Shown here: positions 38,781-63,068 of the stretch, piece after piece | Position numbering within the stretch: the first letter of the stretch is position 1 | How the letters are laid out: each line of letters starts with the position of its first letter | Sequence record: MN695334.1 | DNA: 64,000 nt | Strand: one strand, 5' to 3' | Program-made: the position numbers and the translations under genes | Notes under the pieces: generated by a model | Seen by the model: only the letters and a program-made list of their open reading frames with translations | Databases searched by the model: none | Told to the model about the DNA's origin: nothing

Positions 38781-38843
38781 TAAGATCAGTCAGCAACAAC
38801 ACATACAGTAGTCTCTTAAACTAACCCGTAAAAACTGATCTTG
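38781..38843 (+). ncRNA. Hairpin element copy 1 (stem + CAGCAA + A-rich loop)
   Basis: AAGATCAGT 38782-38790 / ACTGATCTT 38834-38842; CAGCAA 38791-38796. Confidence 0.7.
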
Positions 38844-38906: not shown

Positions 38907-40382
38907 ATGACTTTTATTACTGCACTTGAATCTGAATTGAATACCACCGAAACTCTAAATGGAGCTAAGGCATATAAATCTACTCTCAACAAATGCCTGG
39001 ATCTTTTTGGTAAGATCGGCGCATGTCGCAATAATATCAAACAGGCAGAAAAACTGTTTGATCTAGCATATCGAGAAGATCCTGAAACTGCAACTCGTAT
39101 TCTTTTCTGGGTAAGGGATGTACGTGGAGGTAGCGGTGAGCGTAGTATCTTCCGCACTCTATTTAAAAATCTTGTCCAAAAGAATCAAGAGCTTGGCCAA
39201 AAGCTAGTAGCACTTGTTCCTGAGTATGGTCGTTGGGACGATCTGCTCGTTCTGGAAAATACTTCCGTTTGGAATCAAGTTTTAGATTTGATTACACATC
39301 AACTGAATACCGACCAAATTATGATGGCCAGTGGTGGTCAGGTTTCTCTACTCGCTAAGTGGCTTCCAAGCATTAACGCATCCAGTAAAGACAGCAAGCG
39401 TCTTGGACGTGAAATCGCTGAACATATGGTACTGACTGAAAGGCAGTATCGGAAAACTCTGGCTCGTCTTCGCTCTCATATTAAAATTGTGGAGCAGCAA
39501 ATGTGCTCTAAGGAATGGTCTGCCATTGATTATTCCAAAGTACCTTCACGAGCTTCTTTCATGTATCGTAAGGCATTTGGAAAACAGGATCCTACCCGAT
39601 ATCAGAAATATCTAACTGATGTTGAGAATGGCAAGGCAAAAATCAATGCGAGCACCCTATATCCATATGATGTTGTAGATCAGTATCTCAATAAGGGAGC
39701 ACGGGGAGATAAGACTATTGATCTTCAATGGGAAGCTCTACCAAACTATATGGGTGATAATCTCCTAAATGGTCTTGTTGTAGCTGATGTTTCTGGTTCC
39801 ATGACTCAAAATAATGGACTACCGTTGGCCGTTTCTATCTCTCTTGCGATGTATATTGCAGAGAGAAATGCATCACCAGTTTGGAAAGACAAGTTCATTA
39901 CTTTCTCTAGTCAACCTGAGTTGCAAACTGTTGTTGGTAAAACTATTGGAGAACGTATTCAAAATCTTTCCAGAGCAGATTGGGGATATAATACTGATCT
40001 CATCAGCGTATTCAAAACTATTCTGAAAGCAGCTAAGAGTAAAGATGTTGCTCCAGTGGATATGCCACAAAAAGTAATTATTGTTTCTGATATGCAATTT
40101 GATCAAGCTTGTGTTTCTAACAAACGAACTAGCTTTGAGCATATTGAAAAACTCTATCGTGCTTCTGGGTATGAGTTACCTCAACTGGTCTTTTGGAATG
40201 TCAATGCAATTGGAGCTAATGTTCCAATGACCGTTGCTGATTACAATACCTGTTTGGTTTCTGGTTGTTCCCCATCCATCTTAAAATCTGTTCTCAAAGG
40301 TGAAATTGTCACTGCTGTGGATATGATGAGTGATGCTGTATATTCTGAAAGGTATGTGCAGGTCGGAGCGGCATTCAACTAA
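38907..40382 (+). CDS. DUF2828-family TROVE-related/vWA protein (Ro60-like architecture)
   Basis: TETLNGA, FWVRDVRGGSGER, YGRWDDL, LLAKWLPS, MIDAS DVSGS, SDMQFD, FWNVN. Confidence 0.85.
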   Translation: MTFITALESELNTTETLNGAKAYKSTLNKCLDLFGKIGACRNNIKQAEKLFDLAYREDPETATRILFWVRDVRGGSGERSIFRTLFKNLVQKNQELGQKLVALVPEYGRWDDLLVLENTSVWNQVLDLITHQLNTDQIMMASGGQVSLLAKWLPSINASSKDSKRLGREIAEHMVLTERQYRKTLARLRSHIKIVEQQMCSKEWSAIDYSKVPSRASFMYRKAFGKQDPTRYQKYLTDVENGKAKINASTLYPYDVVDQYLNKGARGDKTIDLQWEALPNYMGDNLLNGLVVADVSGSMTQNNGLPLAVSISLAMYIAERNASPVWKDKFITFSSQPELQTVVGKTIGERIQNLSRADWGYNTDLISVFKTILKAAKSKDVAPVDMPQKVIIVSDMQFDQACVSNKRTSFEHIEKLYRASGYELPQLVFWNVNAIGANVPMTVADYNTCLVSGCSPSILKSVLKGEIVTAVDMMSDAVYSERYVQVGAAFN

Positions 40383-40414
40383 TTTAACTAAAATTATCCA
40401 AAGAGGCTAAACTA

Positions 40415-40582
40415 GTGGAAATTTATGTTCGATGGATTGGTGGAAAGTATGCAGAGGTTCATGTTGACTTTACTGGGGGTCACATTGAAAGTGGACTTCT
40501 CAATTGCAACGAACAAGTTGCTTATGGTGCCATGTTTCGTGAATTAGCGAATGAATTGGACCCAGAAACGACTGATGATTGA
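40415..40582 (+). CDS. Small hypothetical protein (55 aa, GTG start)
   Basis: AGAGG Shine-Dalgarno at 40402; MEIYVRWIGGKYAEVHVDF...ELDPETTDD*. Confidence 0.5.
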   Translation: MEIYVRWIGGKYAEVHVDFTGGHIESGLLNCNEQVAYGAMFRELANELDPETTDD

Positions 40583-40621
40583 CCGCAATGGCCCAGTGGC
40601 CATTAATTTCGAAAAGGGGGG

Positions 40622-40650
40622 TTGACAAGCTCGCCCCCCTCTGCTAAGAT
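40622..40650 (+). promoter_or_regulatory. Sigma70-type promoter driving the RNA array
   Basis: TTGACA-17 nt-TAAGAT with extended TG; first hairpin starts 8 nt downstream. Confidence 0.8.
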
Positions 40651-40657
40651 AAATTCA

Positions 40658-40709
40658 TAGATGATTCAGCCATTAAACTTTTTTTGGTAAAAAACACAAC
40701 ATCATCTAG
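40658..40709 (+). ncRNA. Hairpin element copy 3
   Basis: TAGATGAT / ATCATCTA stem, TCAGCCA, inner T7-GGT-A6 hairpin. Confidence 0.75.
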
Positions 40710-40720
40710 ATTTAAAACCT

Positions 40721-40767
40721 TAGGTGGTTCAGCAACTAAAAACATAGTAAGTTAAAAAACCACCTAG
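40721..40767 (+). ncRNA. Hairpin element copy 4
   Basis: TAGGTGGTT / AACCACCTA 9-bp stem, CAGCAA. Confidence 0.75.
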
Positions 40768-40774
40768 TTAATTT

Positions 40775-40884
40775 CGGGGAATAGCTCAATGGTAGAGCAA
40801 CGTAAAATATATCTAGTTTAGATATTAACTGCAATTTAAAGCATTCGGAGCCGTTGGTTGTAGGTTCGAATCCTGCTTCCCCGA
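40775..40884 (+). tRNA. tRNA with TCG anticodon (Arg) carrying a 38-nt insertion (40803-40840) in the anticodon stem
   Basis: Acceptor CGGGGAA/TTCCCCG, D arm GCTC/GAGC, T arm GTAGG-TTCGAAT-CCTGC; deleting 40803-40840 gives ACGGC-ATTCGGA-GCCGT. Confidence 0.8.
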
Positions 40885-40885
40885 T

Positions 40886-40936
40886 TAGATGATTCAGCCA
40901 TTAAACTTTTTTTTGGTAAAAAACAACATCATCTAG
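40886..40936 (+). ncRNA. Hairpin element copy 5 (near-identical to copy 3)
   Basis: TAGATGAT / ATCATCTA, TCAGCCA; differs from copy 3 only in T-run length and a CA. Confidence 0.75.
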
Positions 40937-40954
40937 ATTTTTTGAATGTCTCCT

Positions 40955-41027
40955 GGGCGCATGGTGAAGTGGATTATCACTAGGAGCTTCTACCTCCTCA
41001 TCCCTGGTTCGAATCCAGGTGCGCCTG
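40955..41027 (+). tRNA. tRNA-Arg(TCT)
   Basis: Acceptor GGGCGCA/TGCGCCT, anticodon arm AGGAG-CTTCTAC-CTCCT, T arm CCTGG-TTCGAAT-CCAGG. Confidence 0.93.
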
Positions 41028-41069
41028 TTAAAGTGACATACTTCCTTCTTTTACTATATAATATATAAT

Positions 41070-41142
41070 GCGAAATTAGTTCAGCGGCTAGAACGCTATC
41101 CTTCCAAGTTAGATGTCACCGGTTCGAATCCGGTATTTCGCT
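41070..41142 (+). tRNA. tRNA-Gly(TCC)
   Basis: Acceptor GCGAAAT/ATTTCGC, loop CTTCCAA, T arm ACCGG-TTCGAAT-CCGGT. Confidence 0.93.
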
Positions 41143-41179
41143 TAACAATCAATGACAAACGTATTACGATTGTGTGAAC

Positions 41180-41253
41180 GGGAACGTAGCTCAATTGGTT
41201 AGAGCACCCACCTTATAAGTGGGAGGTTCTGGGTTCAATCCCCAGCGTTCCTA
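41180..41253 (+). tRNA. tRNA-Ile(TAT)
   Basis: Acceptor GGGAACG/CGTTCCT, anticodon arm CCCAC-CTTATAA-GTGGG, T arm CTGGG-TTCAATC-CCCAG. Confidence 0.92.
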
Positions 41254-41282
41254 TTGACTTTTGAATTTCCCTCGCTGGGGGC

Positions 41283-41312
41283 TTGACAGGCCAGGATCTC
41301 CTGTGCTATGAT
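41283..41312 (+). promoter_or_regulatory. Sigma70-type promoter
   Basis: TTGACA-18 nt-TATGAT with extended TG; GGCC-GCAA-GGCC hairpin and TAAATA just downstream. Confidence 0.7.
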
Positions 41313-41342
41313 CAACGTAAGGCCGCAAGGCCCATAAATATC

Positions 41343-41591
41343 ATGGATTCAAATTTCGTTAACTCATTCAAATCAATGTCACTGACCACAAAATTTAAAA
41401 AAGATATTCAGGTACTGCGGCAAGCTGCTAATGGTGAATTTTATTTGGACGTAAAAAATCCAAAACTTTTTAAAAAAGTAAAACGTTACTATGAAGATGT
41501 TGGTGTAGTTTTTTCTGGTGATCCTGAAGATGATTATGAAATGCTGATCGATTACCTATATGAAGATCTTGAAGTACAACCGGTTGCGTAA
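41343..41591 (+). CDS. Conserved cyanophage hypothetical protein
   Basis: TKFKKDI..LR.AANGE.YLDVKNPKLFKKV.RYYE..GVVFSGDP; start could be 41343 or a later ATG. Confidence 0.7.
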   Translation: MDSNFVNSFKSMSLTTKFKKDIQVLRQAANGEFYLDVKNPKLFKKVKRYYEDVGVVFSGDPEDDYEMLIDYLYEDLEVQPVA

Positions 41592-41817
41592 TTTAGATAA
41601 GTTTACAACTTATAGATATCTTGGAAATTTACTTATTATCGTTGGATACTACATTCTACTTTGGCAAAGTGAGTCTGTCGGTTTAATCATAAAGCTAGTT
41701 GGGACTCTCATGGCCATACCTTCACTTTATGTCCTTAAGTTGTGGGATGCTTTGGTTATATGTGGATTCTTTGCTCTGATTGAATTTTCAAGATTACTTT
41801 ATTTAATAAATCAATGA
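41560..41817 (+). CDS. Small membrane protein
   Basis: RYLGNLLIIVGYYILLW...; three hydrophobic stretches; start uncertain. Confidence 0.6.
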   Translation: MKILKYNRLRNLDKFTTYRYLGNLLIIVGYYILLWQSESVGLIIKLVGTLMAIPSLYVLKLWDALVICGFFALIEFSRLLYLINQ

Positions 41818-61547: not shown

Positions 61548-61669
61548 TAAATAGTACGTCTGTCTAGACTGCAATCTCTACGGGCAAGGCTAGGTGCTCT
61601 TTATTGGTCATCTAGCCTTCTATAAAAAATTATTTAAATAAATAATAGTGCAGTCTAGATAGAATAGTA
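61548..61669 (+). promoter_or_regulatory. Late promoters and structured leader of endonuclease gene
   Basis: TAAATA 61548 and 61635/61639; inverted repeat TCTAGACTGCA 61563-61573 / TGCAGTCTAGA 61649-61659; inner AAGGCTAG/CTAGCCTT hairpin. Confidence 0.7.
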
Positions 61670-62396: not shown

Positions 62397-63068
62397 ATGC
62401 AATTTACACATAATATTCTGGATGTCCCTAAGTTAAAGAGATTTCATCTTGACGGTAAGAGATTCTATCAAAATCCCAATTCTGATACGATAAAAAATTA
62501 TATTTCGATCACGACTATTACTTCACATTACAATAAAGAGAAGTTTAAGGCGTGGAGAGAAAGAGTCGGAGAAGAAGAAGCCAATAGGATTACGAATGCC
62601 GCGACTAGCCGTGGTACACAAATGCATACCTTGGTGGAGCACTATATTGGAAACGAACCACTTCCAAAAGCCGCTCCACTACCAAGAATGTTGTTTGACG
62701 TAGCAAGGCCAGAGTTAAATAAGATAAATAATATATTAGGTATCGAAATTCCACTCTTTTCAGAGTATTTCGGTATAGCCGGTACTTGCGATACTGTTGC
62801 TGAATATAATAATATTCTGAGCATTATCGACTATAAGACTTCCGAAAAACCAAAACCGAGAGAATGGATTGATTCATATTTCGTTCAAGCATTAGCGTAT
62901 AGTATAATGCTTTATGAAATGACCGGAATTAAAGCAAAACAACTTGTCATTATTATGGCATGTGAAAACGGAGAGGTTGAAGTTTATATCGAAACTGATT
63001 TCAAAAAATACCTCAAAATGCTTGTCGAATACATCAAAAAATTTAAACAGGATCATGACAGCAACTAA
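62397..63068 (+). CDS. Cas4-like PD-(D/E)xK exonuclease
   Basis: SITTI, WR..VGEEEAN, RGT.MH, AGTCD, IIDYKTS, YF.Q...YS. Confidence 0.88.
   Translation: MQFTHNILDVPKLKRFHLDGKRFYQNPNSDTIKNYISITTITSHYNKEKFKAWRERVGEEEANRITNAATSRGTQMHTLVEHYIGNEPLPKAAPLPRMLFDVARPELNKINNILGIEIPLFSEYFGIAGTCDTVAEYNNILSIIDYKTSEKPKPREWIDSYFVQALAYSIMLYEMTGIKAKQLVIIMACENGEVEVYIETDFKKYLKMLVEYIKKFKQDHDSN

Follow-up and report, generated by a model that had tools for sequence, protein, structure and literature searches.

The element at positions 40775-40884 (plus strand) of the window, that is, the final 64 kb (64,000 nt; MN695334.1) of the genome of Synechococcus phage B3, is probably an unspliced non-coding RNA of about 110 nt that has the shape of a transfer RNA (tRNA), resembles the Y RNAs of the YrlA type and is docked by the Ro-like protein gp345. 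It is most likely a member of a large, apparently undescribed RNA family encoded beside Ro60-like genes in many phages. B3 is a T4-like freshwater cyanophage of 245 kb, and phage B23 is identical to it across the compared stretch. In GenBank the element is labelled 'tRNA-OTHER / tRNA-Pseudo-GCA', where the tRNA-Pseudo call is credited to tRNAscan-SE, and the genome announcement of B3 and B23 is silent on both the element and the adjoining gp345 gene (PMC7171214). The literature searched held no account of these RNAs nor of any RNA partner for DUF2828 proteins, the group to which gp345 belongs, and no family in Rfam 15 matched the module RNAs described here. A preliminary description of the locus had raised two possibilities and preferred one of them, an unspliced YrlA-like mimic tethered to the Ro-like protein. 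This one is supported by comparative evidence, namely a covarying module, a link to the Ro60 fold and a circular permutation of RNAs with YrlA topology. The element has the same sequence in the isolates B3 and B23 and in a metagenomic contig (L002); therefore, it is no assembly artefact, and the misassembly considered in the preliminary description is ruled out.

The element comprises 110 nt and was recognized by the Rfam tRNA model as well as by our own model R1 (see below). The acceptor stem CGGGGAA/UUCCCCG (40775-81/40877-83), the D arm with GG in its loop (40784-98), the T arm with UUCGAAU in its loop (40860-76), the conserved elbow nucleotides and the discriminator A40884 are all present, and the canonical nature of the three arms had been described correctly in every sequence detail. 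The Rfam tRNA model (RF00005) aligned end to end over model positions 1-71 with 51.4 bits, and this alignment carried a 49-nt insertion within the anticodon arm. There is no continuous 5-bp anticodon stem with a 7-nt loop; the stem ACG/CGU (40800-02/40852-54) is split at 29/30 by an insert of 38 nt (40803-40840). The insert consists of an A-rich strand (40803-08), a 7-bp helix AUAUCUA/UAGAUAU (40809-15/40819-25) capped by GUU, a UAA spacer and, 3' of the hairpin, the motif CUGCAAUU (40829-36). An anticodon-like hairpin, GC-AUUCGGA-GC (40841-51), follows. The stem, its cap and the ACUGCAA behind them (40828-34) agreed exactly with what had been reported. Minimum free energy folding also drew a three-bp pairing of GUA (40802-04) with UGC of the motif, which was dropped; by eye, the CUGCA members from loci L010, L011 and L056 have no such upstream partner.

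Comparative analysis indicated that the insert is a conserved module. With gp345 as bait, 61 related viral loci were fetched from IMG/VR. In the closer relatives, ARAGORN with introns allowed found 84 tRNA-shaped elements of 110-125 nt (53 of them unique) just 3' of the DUF2828 gene. In all 84 an A-rich strand preceded a short hairpin, and CNGCA(AUU) lay 0-4 nt behind that hairpin; the tRNA bodies could be sorted into five or more types. When 40 distinct modules were aligned, the C, G, C and A of the motif proved invariant, five of the seven helix pairs showed compensatory changes, and 88% of the helix cells were paired, compared with 75% after shuffling. The covariation score of the helix was 0.332 versus 0.129 ± 0.017 for shuffled alignments; none of 500 shuffles reached it, and slid registers scored no higher than 0.12. 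We define the module as the A-rich strand, the covarying helix and CNGCAAUU. Conservation of the stem and motif among homologs, on which the preliminary description had made its reading depend, was thus found, with covariation, and both are also common to stand-alone RNAs.

A covariance model (R1) was built without the window sequence. In the window it matched 40794-40838 with 40.2 bits (E about 6e-8, calibration being rough), and this was the sole significant match in 64 kb. The next one (63028-63068, 17.3 bits, ATGACAGCAACTAA) lies within a gene overlap in coding sequence and was rejected as chance. Among 31 close cyanophage loci R1 gave 73 matches at E<=1e-3, every one on the strand of the DUF2828/DUF7788 gene, and in 22 distant loci it gave zero matches at E<=0.1. 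The capped form embedded in a tRNA is therefore specific to the B3-like cyanophage clade, across which protein identity drops to 61%. By its module parts, its location on the gene strand and its proximity to a DUF2828 gene, the window element belongs to the DUF2828-associated family of CNGCAAUU-module RNAs. A related variant occurs at L006 5708-5815, and similarly in L008, L011, L019 and L043. It combines a capped module with a T arm and a stem resembling that of an acceptor (GGGGAAG/CUUCUCC), a D arm could not be recognised in it, and it follows a UCAGACAG...CUGUCUG hairpin.

The module is also encoded by free elements, in which the order is a 5' arm WAGRUNNNN, CAGCMA, a variable loop, an A-rich run and the 3' arm, so that the helix forms the ends of the RNA. 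Four such elements were identified in the window, all on the plus strand. One lies in the leader of the gp345 gene (38781-38843; arms UAAGAUCAGU at 38781-90 and ACUGAUCUUG at 38834-43, CAGCAA at 38791-96, with an A-rich run 5' of the 3' arm). Two precede the tRNA-shaped element, A1 (40658-40708; arms UAGAUGAU and AUCAUCUA, CAGCCA at 40667-72, with U6-GGU-A6 forming a hairpin inside it and a 3' side rich in A) and B1 (40720-40767; arms UUAGGUGGUU and AACCACCUAG, CAGCAA at 40730-35, folding z = -3.5). A2, a near copy of A1, follows it (40885-40936; arms UUAGAUGAU and AUCAUCUAG, CAGCCA at 40895-900). In the tRNA-shaped RNA the motif comes after the 3' arm of the capped hairpin, in the free elements after the 5' arm, and in both forms the A-rich strand precedes the opposite arm. 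The circular permutation of the insert relative to the free hairpins A1, B1 and A2, first noticed in the preliminary description, is real. A further candidate at 61559-61663, with 10-bp arms UCUGUCUAGA and UCUAGAUAGA and CUGCAA, was not counted because its arms do not fit the WAGRU consensus and an A-rich lead-in is missing; it is probably unrelated.

The bare motif WCWGCMW, with which a search of further phage tRNAs had been proposed, was not enriched in the window (114 occurrences versus 118.8 expected). Only the composite of arm and motif is informative. The composite of arm and CNGCMA was highly non-random: in about 570 kb of related loci it had 145 occurrences on the strand of the gene and a single one on the opposite strand, and 79 of the 145 had a perfect 9-bp partner downstream together with the A-rich lead-in. 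A strict test of 9/9 pairs was adopted for the structural partner because about half of the chance matches in AT-rich DNA satisfy a loose one (8/9 pairs with G-U counted, distance up to 140 nt). In a reverse test, IMG/VR was scanned for TAGATNNTTCAGCAATT; structured copies were found in 15 of 22 matches on DUF2828 contigs versus 0 of 80 elsewhere. Nineteen of these 80 were inspected and all were chance-like matches in coding sequence, and 38 'orphan' IMG/VR matches were likewise rejected as chance matches in coding sequence. A blastn search with the free elements of the window against 50,697 phage records retrieved B3 and B23 only. Relative to the DUF2828 gene, 138 modules were located less than 1 kb downstream, 36 at 1-2.5 kb downstream and 26 less than 300 nt upstream. 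The modules form arrays of up to about ten RNAs interleaved with tRNAs.

Beyond the cyanophages, elements arranged as arm, N2-3, CAGCAA(UU), A-rich run and opposite arm were detected next to DUF2828 genes with an identity of only 34-41%. Mycobacteriophage LeBron encodes three module copies after gp53, Felix O1a four in the tRNA cluster after gp42, Listeria phage P100 three behind a promoter and upstream of gp165, and Campylobacter phage Los1 one directly upstream of its DUF2828 gene. The RNAs of Felix O1a (L065, 5445-5569) and LeBron (L064, 4022-4143) both read arm, CAGCAA, anticodon-like hairpin, T arm, loop-closed acceptor stem, D arm, A-rich run and opposite arm, an order of segments that gives them YrlA topology. 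Opening the cyanophage RNAs at the hairpin cap and joining their acceptor ends made them align colinearly with the native RNAs of Felix O1a and LeBron, the common segments including AUUUCU-loop-AGAAAAGG and UGGUGUAAUGGUAGCACUUAA. The window RNA is therefore a circular permutation of a YrlA-like RNA. The LeBron RNA matched the full Rfam YrlA model with 39.8 bits (E 1.7e-7), under the gathering score of 69, and the YrlA model (RF02553) had no match in the window or in 12 related cyanophage loci. The element itself has the tRNA-like domain and lacks the terminal stem with GNCGAA typical of YrlA; its helix is capped, its ends lie at the acceptor stem and its motif is CUGCAAUU.

Other arrangements of the module were observed as well. 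In the distant relatives L058 (3377-3473) and L052 (3615-3715) a tRNA that is complete in other respects has the module helix in place of its acceptor stem; the L058 element has a D arm, an anticodon arm with the loop CUUUUAA and a T arm, and the Rfam tRNA model matches it over positions 8-63 only. In some relatives the module encloses nothing but a T arm. The tRNA-rich region of Listeria P100 also contains, at L066 1459-2010 and about 1 kb upstream of the DUF2828 gene, a full-length match to the ROOL RNA family that stays below threshold (86 bits versus a gathering score of 99.1, E 4e-16).

The neighbouring gene, which lies 390 nt upstream of the element on the same strand, encodes gp345 (38907-40382, plus strand), a protein of 491 aa with the domains DUF2828 and DUF7788 (Pfam, 1.3e-39 and 3.4e-50). 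Homologs were found in 711 phage records, some of which are labelled 'Ro-like RNA binding protein'; DUF2828/DUF7788 is a domain of unknown function and the annotation 'Ro-like' was made by remote homology only. An AlphaFold2 model built from 23 homologs (predicted local distance difference test score 81) comprises a helical-repeat region and a vWA domain. In a Foldseek search with this model the only full-length matches were Ro60/TROVE proteins. They occupied the top 13 ranks (E 3.5e-9 to 2e-5, template modelling (TM) scores 0.37-0.57), which were also the only matches at E<=0.001, and included the Ro60 of phage phiLo, Xenopus and human Ro60 and Deinococcus Rsr, with isolated vWA domains ranking next. 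The residues D294-x-S296-x-S298 ... T363 ... D395, of the type of the metal ion-dependent adhesion site, are invariant among the homologs. Ro60 genes with adjoining tRNA-like Y RNAs on the same strand are established in bacteria and in 22 phages (PMC4201824), and the Ro60 of phage phiLo binds phage Y-like RNAs and the host PNPase (PMC12135203). LeBron gp53 was reported to be moderately toxic on overexpression, and no RNA partner was discussed (PMC13148394).

The array appears to have a promoter of its own. A G6/C6 hairpin (40616-40650, plus strand; stem 40616-21/40634-39) surrounds a promoter-like site with TTGACA at 40622-27 and, after 17 nt, TAAGAT at 40645-50. The design GGGGG-TTGACA...CCCCC-TAAGAT/TAAAAT recurs 3' of the gene in relatives, and a loose promoter consensus (TTGACA, 16-18 nt, TAnnWT) was present within 1200 nt downstream in 24 of 44 loci. 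Judged from these sequence patterns, the site is likely the start of a small-RNA/tRNA transcript, and a -35 box embedded in a hairpin could act as a combined terminator and promoter or as a regulated promoter. In Felix O1a (L065, 4413-4445) the TTGACA 3' of the DUF2828 gene likewise lies inside a G/C-rich hairpin, GGGTATTGACA...TACCC. Between the Ro-like gene and the promoter the window contains gp346, an open reading frame of 55 aa (40415-40582) with no Pfam match, and in the relatives inspected (e.g., L006, L008, L011 and L019) the promoter directly follows the stop of the gene. Three ordinary tRNA genes, for Arg-UCU (40954-41028), Gly-UCC (41070-41142) and Ile-UAU (41180-41253), lie directly 3' of the array on the plus strand and may share its transcription unit. 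A match to the Rfam family 'Plastid-ycf2' on the minus strand at 41180-41254 (33 bits versus a gathering score of 65.7) is a false positive derived from the reverse complement of the tRNA-Ile gene.

Equivalents of the leader module occur 10-140 nt upstream of the gene in many relatives, and also in Listeria P100 and Campylobacter Los1. The presence of a free module in the leader of the DUF2828 gene in many lineages suggests co-transcription or autoregulation through the gene's own RNA site. Such leader elements were noted at L008 3863-3925 and equivalent positions, L066 2652-2918 and L068 2901-2979. The arrays also vary between near relatives. Where the window has 40885-40953, contig L002 (5985-6300), whose Ro-like protein is 99% identical to that of B3, carries an extra unit of free A, free B and tRNA-shaped element with a GUU-type loop and a CCGCAA motif. 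Since this unit is absent in B3, units are gained and lost, and the sequences look like a recent gain or loss by recombination between A elements. The loop of B1 also differs between B3 and L002.

From the association of genes and the analogy with known Ro60 systems, gp345 would bind the module RNA in the following way. A precursor would be transcribed from the promoter at 40622-40650; besides the tRNA-shaped RNA it would contain the free module RNAs and perhaps also tRNA-Arg, tRNA-Gly and tRNA-Ile. Ordinary tRNA end-processing would then free the units, and it is proposed for 40775-40884 because the acceptor stem, D arm and T arm are intact. The protein would dock at the junction of the helix and CNGCAAUU, as Ro60 does on the stem of Y RNA; in the tRNA-shaped RNA the A-rich strand, the 7-bp helix and CUGCAAUU would form this docking site in place of a continuous anticodon stem. 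The tRNA body might serve as a handle, the elbow and acceptor end of which would draw tRNA-recognising enzymes or substrates to the Ro-like ring. In the permutation step the ends would have shifted to the acceptor stem and the docking helix would have been capped, with the free hairpins keeping the classical topology of Y RNAs. The leader module (38781-38843) may provide feedback on gp345 expression.

In this reading the transcription, processing, protein binding and downstream role of the DUF2828-associated RNAs are inferred, and several observations weigh against it. The conserved CAGCAAUU is unlike GNCGAA, the motif implicated in Ro60 binding. The kinship of gp345 with Ro60 rests on a predicted fold with TM scores of 0.37-0.57; gp345 had no match to any TROVE Pfam model, vWA_Ro60 was hit only weakly (E 0.12) and in 2 of 23 family members, and sequence-only searches of the PDB with gp345 gave no useful match. 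The evidence outside the cyanophages comes from one genome per lineage and a permissive arm finder. Most members of the window subfamily keep a tRNA-like loop (7 nt, U33, purine 37), which hints that the shape of the anticodon loop is under some selection that a pure scaffold does not need; something may still read the loop. Finally, the pre-tRNA transcript could be the place where the free modules act, in cis, instead of existing as stable RNAs.

The last point can be developed into a separate explanation, which we consider unlikely. The modules would be cis recognition sites in a polycistronic tRNA precursor, used by the Ro-like protein or a host RNase to guide how the phage tRNA array is trimmed, quality-checked or degraded, and the tRNA-shaped copy would be a by-product of processing or a punctuation unit. 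It agrees with the finding that, after a single promoter, modules alternate with tRNA-shaped units and true tRNAs on the same strand, with module helices ending 2-4 nt from neighbouring tRNA-like ends, and with the location of DUF2828 genes in or beside the tRNA clusters of cyanophages, Felix O1, P100 and Los1. Bacterial Ro60 is moreover known to work with exonucleases in RNA maturation and decay (PMC4201824). However, modules are also found upstream of the gene with no tRNA after them (38781-38843 in the window, and in P100), the members with YrlA topology appear to be self-contained, and it is hard to see why a processing site should be placed within a tRNA body that is well conserved and covaries.

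The other possibility raised in the preliminary description was a protein-spliced intron. In its full form, this reading takes the element for a genuine intron-bearing tRNA-Arg(UCG), from which a protein endonuclease and an RtcB- or Rnl-type ligase would excise 38 nt to leave a 72-nt decoder, the module being the splicing signal. Excision of exactly 40803-40840 does join ACG (40800-02) to GC (40841-42), as had been claimed, and yields a perfect 5-bp stem ACGGC/GCCGU (3' strand 40850-54) around the 7-nt loop AUUCGGA (40843-49) with U33 and G37. Most of the window subfamily keep the split stem ACG|GC...GCCGU together with the tRNA-like loop, and genes for an RNA ligase and a polynucleotide kinase are present in some DUF2828 phages (LeBron, PMC13148394). 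As evidence against an intron, the position of the module in the tRNA frame shifts among members (26/27, 29/30 as in the window, in place of the whole loop, or 38/39). Conceptual excision leaves no anticodon hairpin in about 19 of the 53 unique members, and others receive loops of 4, 6, 8 or 9 nt, C33 or a pyrimidine at 37. Among orthologs of the window type the body is the same, but the loop triplet is UCG, UGG, UCU, UGU or GUU. The intron and pseudogene readings are therefore disfavoured, since orthologs disagree in the anticodon and about one third of the family lack it, and the label tRNA(UCG) had overstated the status of the element as a decoder.

Further evidence points in the same direction, and we regard splicing as very unlikely. 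The same module occurs in RNAs without a tRNA body and in the permuted RNAs, where splicing is meaningless. The default mode of ARAGORN did not call the element, and with introns allowed the program called Pro(CGG). Three readings, GCA by tRNAscan-SE, CGG by ARAGORN and UCG in the preliminary description, thus gave three anticodons, which argues against a clear decoder. By the established identity rules of E. coli, U20 in place of A20 is poor for arginyl-tRNA synthetase. A bulge-helix-bulge (3-nt/4-bp/3-nt) could not be drawn by eye at 40802/03 and 40840/41, where no motif search was run. A group I intron had been excluded correctly: the insert has 38 nt at 29/30, whereas this class is expected to have about 200 nt or more, a group I core and a site in the anticodon loop. 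In agreement with this, the Rfam model Intron_gpI had no match at the gathering threshold over the whole window, nor at E<=1 in 40300-41600, and tRNA was the sole Rfam family with a match in the window (gathering threshold) and in the cyanophage loci.

It is highly improbable that the element is a functionless dead tRNA gene struck by a mobile hairpin repeat, as the pseudogene flag in GenBank, the hairpin elements repeated nearby and the gain or loss of a unit between B3 and L002 might suggest, because the cloverleaf arms and the module are conserved with compensatory changes over dozens of diverged loci (protein identity down to 61%) and the strand bias is absolute; the same composite architecture also recurs, permuted, in phages of other bacterial phyla.

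The annotated pseudo-tRNA at 40775-40884 is thus probably a functional RNA, and in B3-like cyanophages tRNA finders will wrongly report members of this family as pseudo-tRNAs or as tRNAs that contain introns, the anticodons assigned being arbitrary. The combination of a Ro-type protein with a tRNA-mimicking Y RNA was already known; new are the protein clade, the docking motif, the organisation in arrays and the permutation to tRNA topology. The last is a clean natural case of circular permutation in a structured RNA, between Y RNA topology and tRNA topology. The module provides a concrete candidate RNA partner and a defined putative binding motif for the widespread DUF2828/DUF7788 proteins. 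If a YrlA-like RNA docked by gp345 is the correct reading, many more phages would share in the Ro60-Y RNA partnership, among them some that grow on laboratory strains of E. coli K-12, Salmonella and M. smegmatis, and the role of tRNA mimicry in Ro-type ribonucleoproteins would be open to genetics.

A bolder proposal, which we put forward tentatively and consider rather doubtful, is that DUF2828/DUF7788 proteins, present in more than 700 phage genomes (Felix O1-like, P100/A511-like, cluster L mycobacteriophages), constitute a so far overlooked, phage-wide Ro-like ribonucleoprotein system whose topology-swapping RNA partners share one docking module and have regained true tRNA ends in the B3-like cyanophages. 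Maturation of the B3-like RNA would in that case fall to RNase P and the CCA-adding enzyme, and the RNA might be charged. Acting as an adaptor or decoy in tRNA shape, it could link the Ro-like ring, along with an exonuclease or repair enzyme that is recruited, either to host defences directed at tRNAs or to quality control of the phage's own tRNA arrays.

Among known systems, the YrlA-type Y RNAs (RF02553) with Ro60/Rsr share the most features with the window RNA. In both, a small RNA adjoins a gene for a protein with the Ro60 fold (predicted for gp345) on the same strand (Chen et al., 2014, PMC4201824), several copies are found per genome, and a protein-docking helix with a short conserved single-stranded motif is combined with a tRNA-like domain of D arm, T arm and acceptor stem. 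They differ in that the window RNA has tRNA topology, with ends at the acceptor stem and a capped docking helix, that the family motif is CNGCAAUU while that of YrlA is GNCGAA, and that the partner is a DUF2828/DUF7788 protein and no Pfam TROVE protein. The Ro60 of Thermus phage phiLo with Yrl1 and Yrl2 (PMC12135203; PDB 9KOP, 9L5Y) likewise pairs a phage protein of the Ro60 fold with phage Y-like RNAs encoded next to its gene, and it is the best structural match of the gp345 model. However, phiLo Ro60 is a recognisable Ro60 homolog with only about 15% identity to gp345 in the structural alignment, and its RNA partners are Y RNAs of stem-bulge-stem form whose motif is CGAA, with no permuted, tRNA-shaped form reported for them.

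Intron-bearing and permuted tRNA genes (archaeal genes with bulge-helix-bulge introns, algal and archaeal permuted tRNAs, bacterial group I introns) also have an interrupted anticodon arm, and the permuted ones show a circular-permutation relation between related genes. In those genes processing restores a standard decoder, whereas here the inserted part is the most conserved, the anticodon is dispensable, and the permutation joins two topologies of non-coding RNA. Viral and cellular tRNA-like structures, such as mascRNA and the 3' tRNA-like structures of plant viruses, have no sequence or genomic kinship with the window RNA and lack a dedicated module for a Ro-like partner; they resemble it in that the mimicry engages tRNA-processing enzymes and not decoding.

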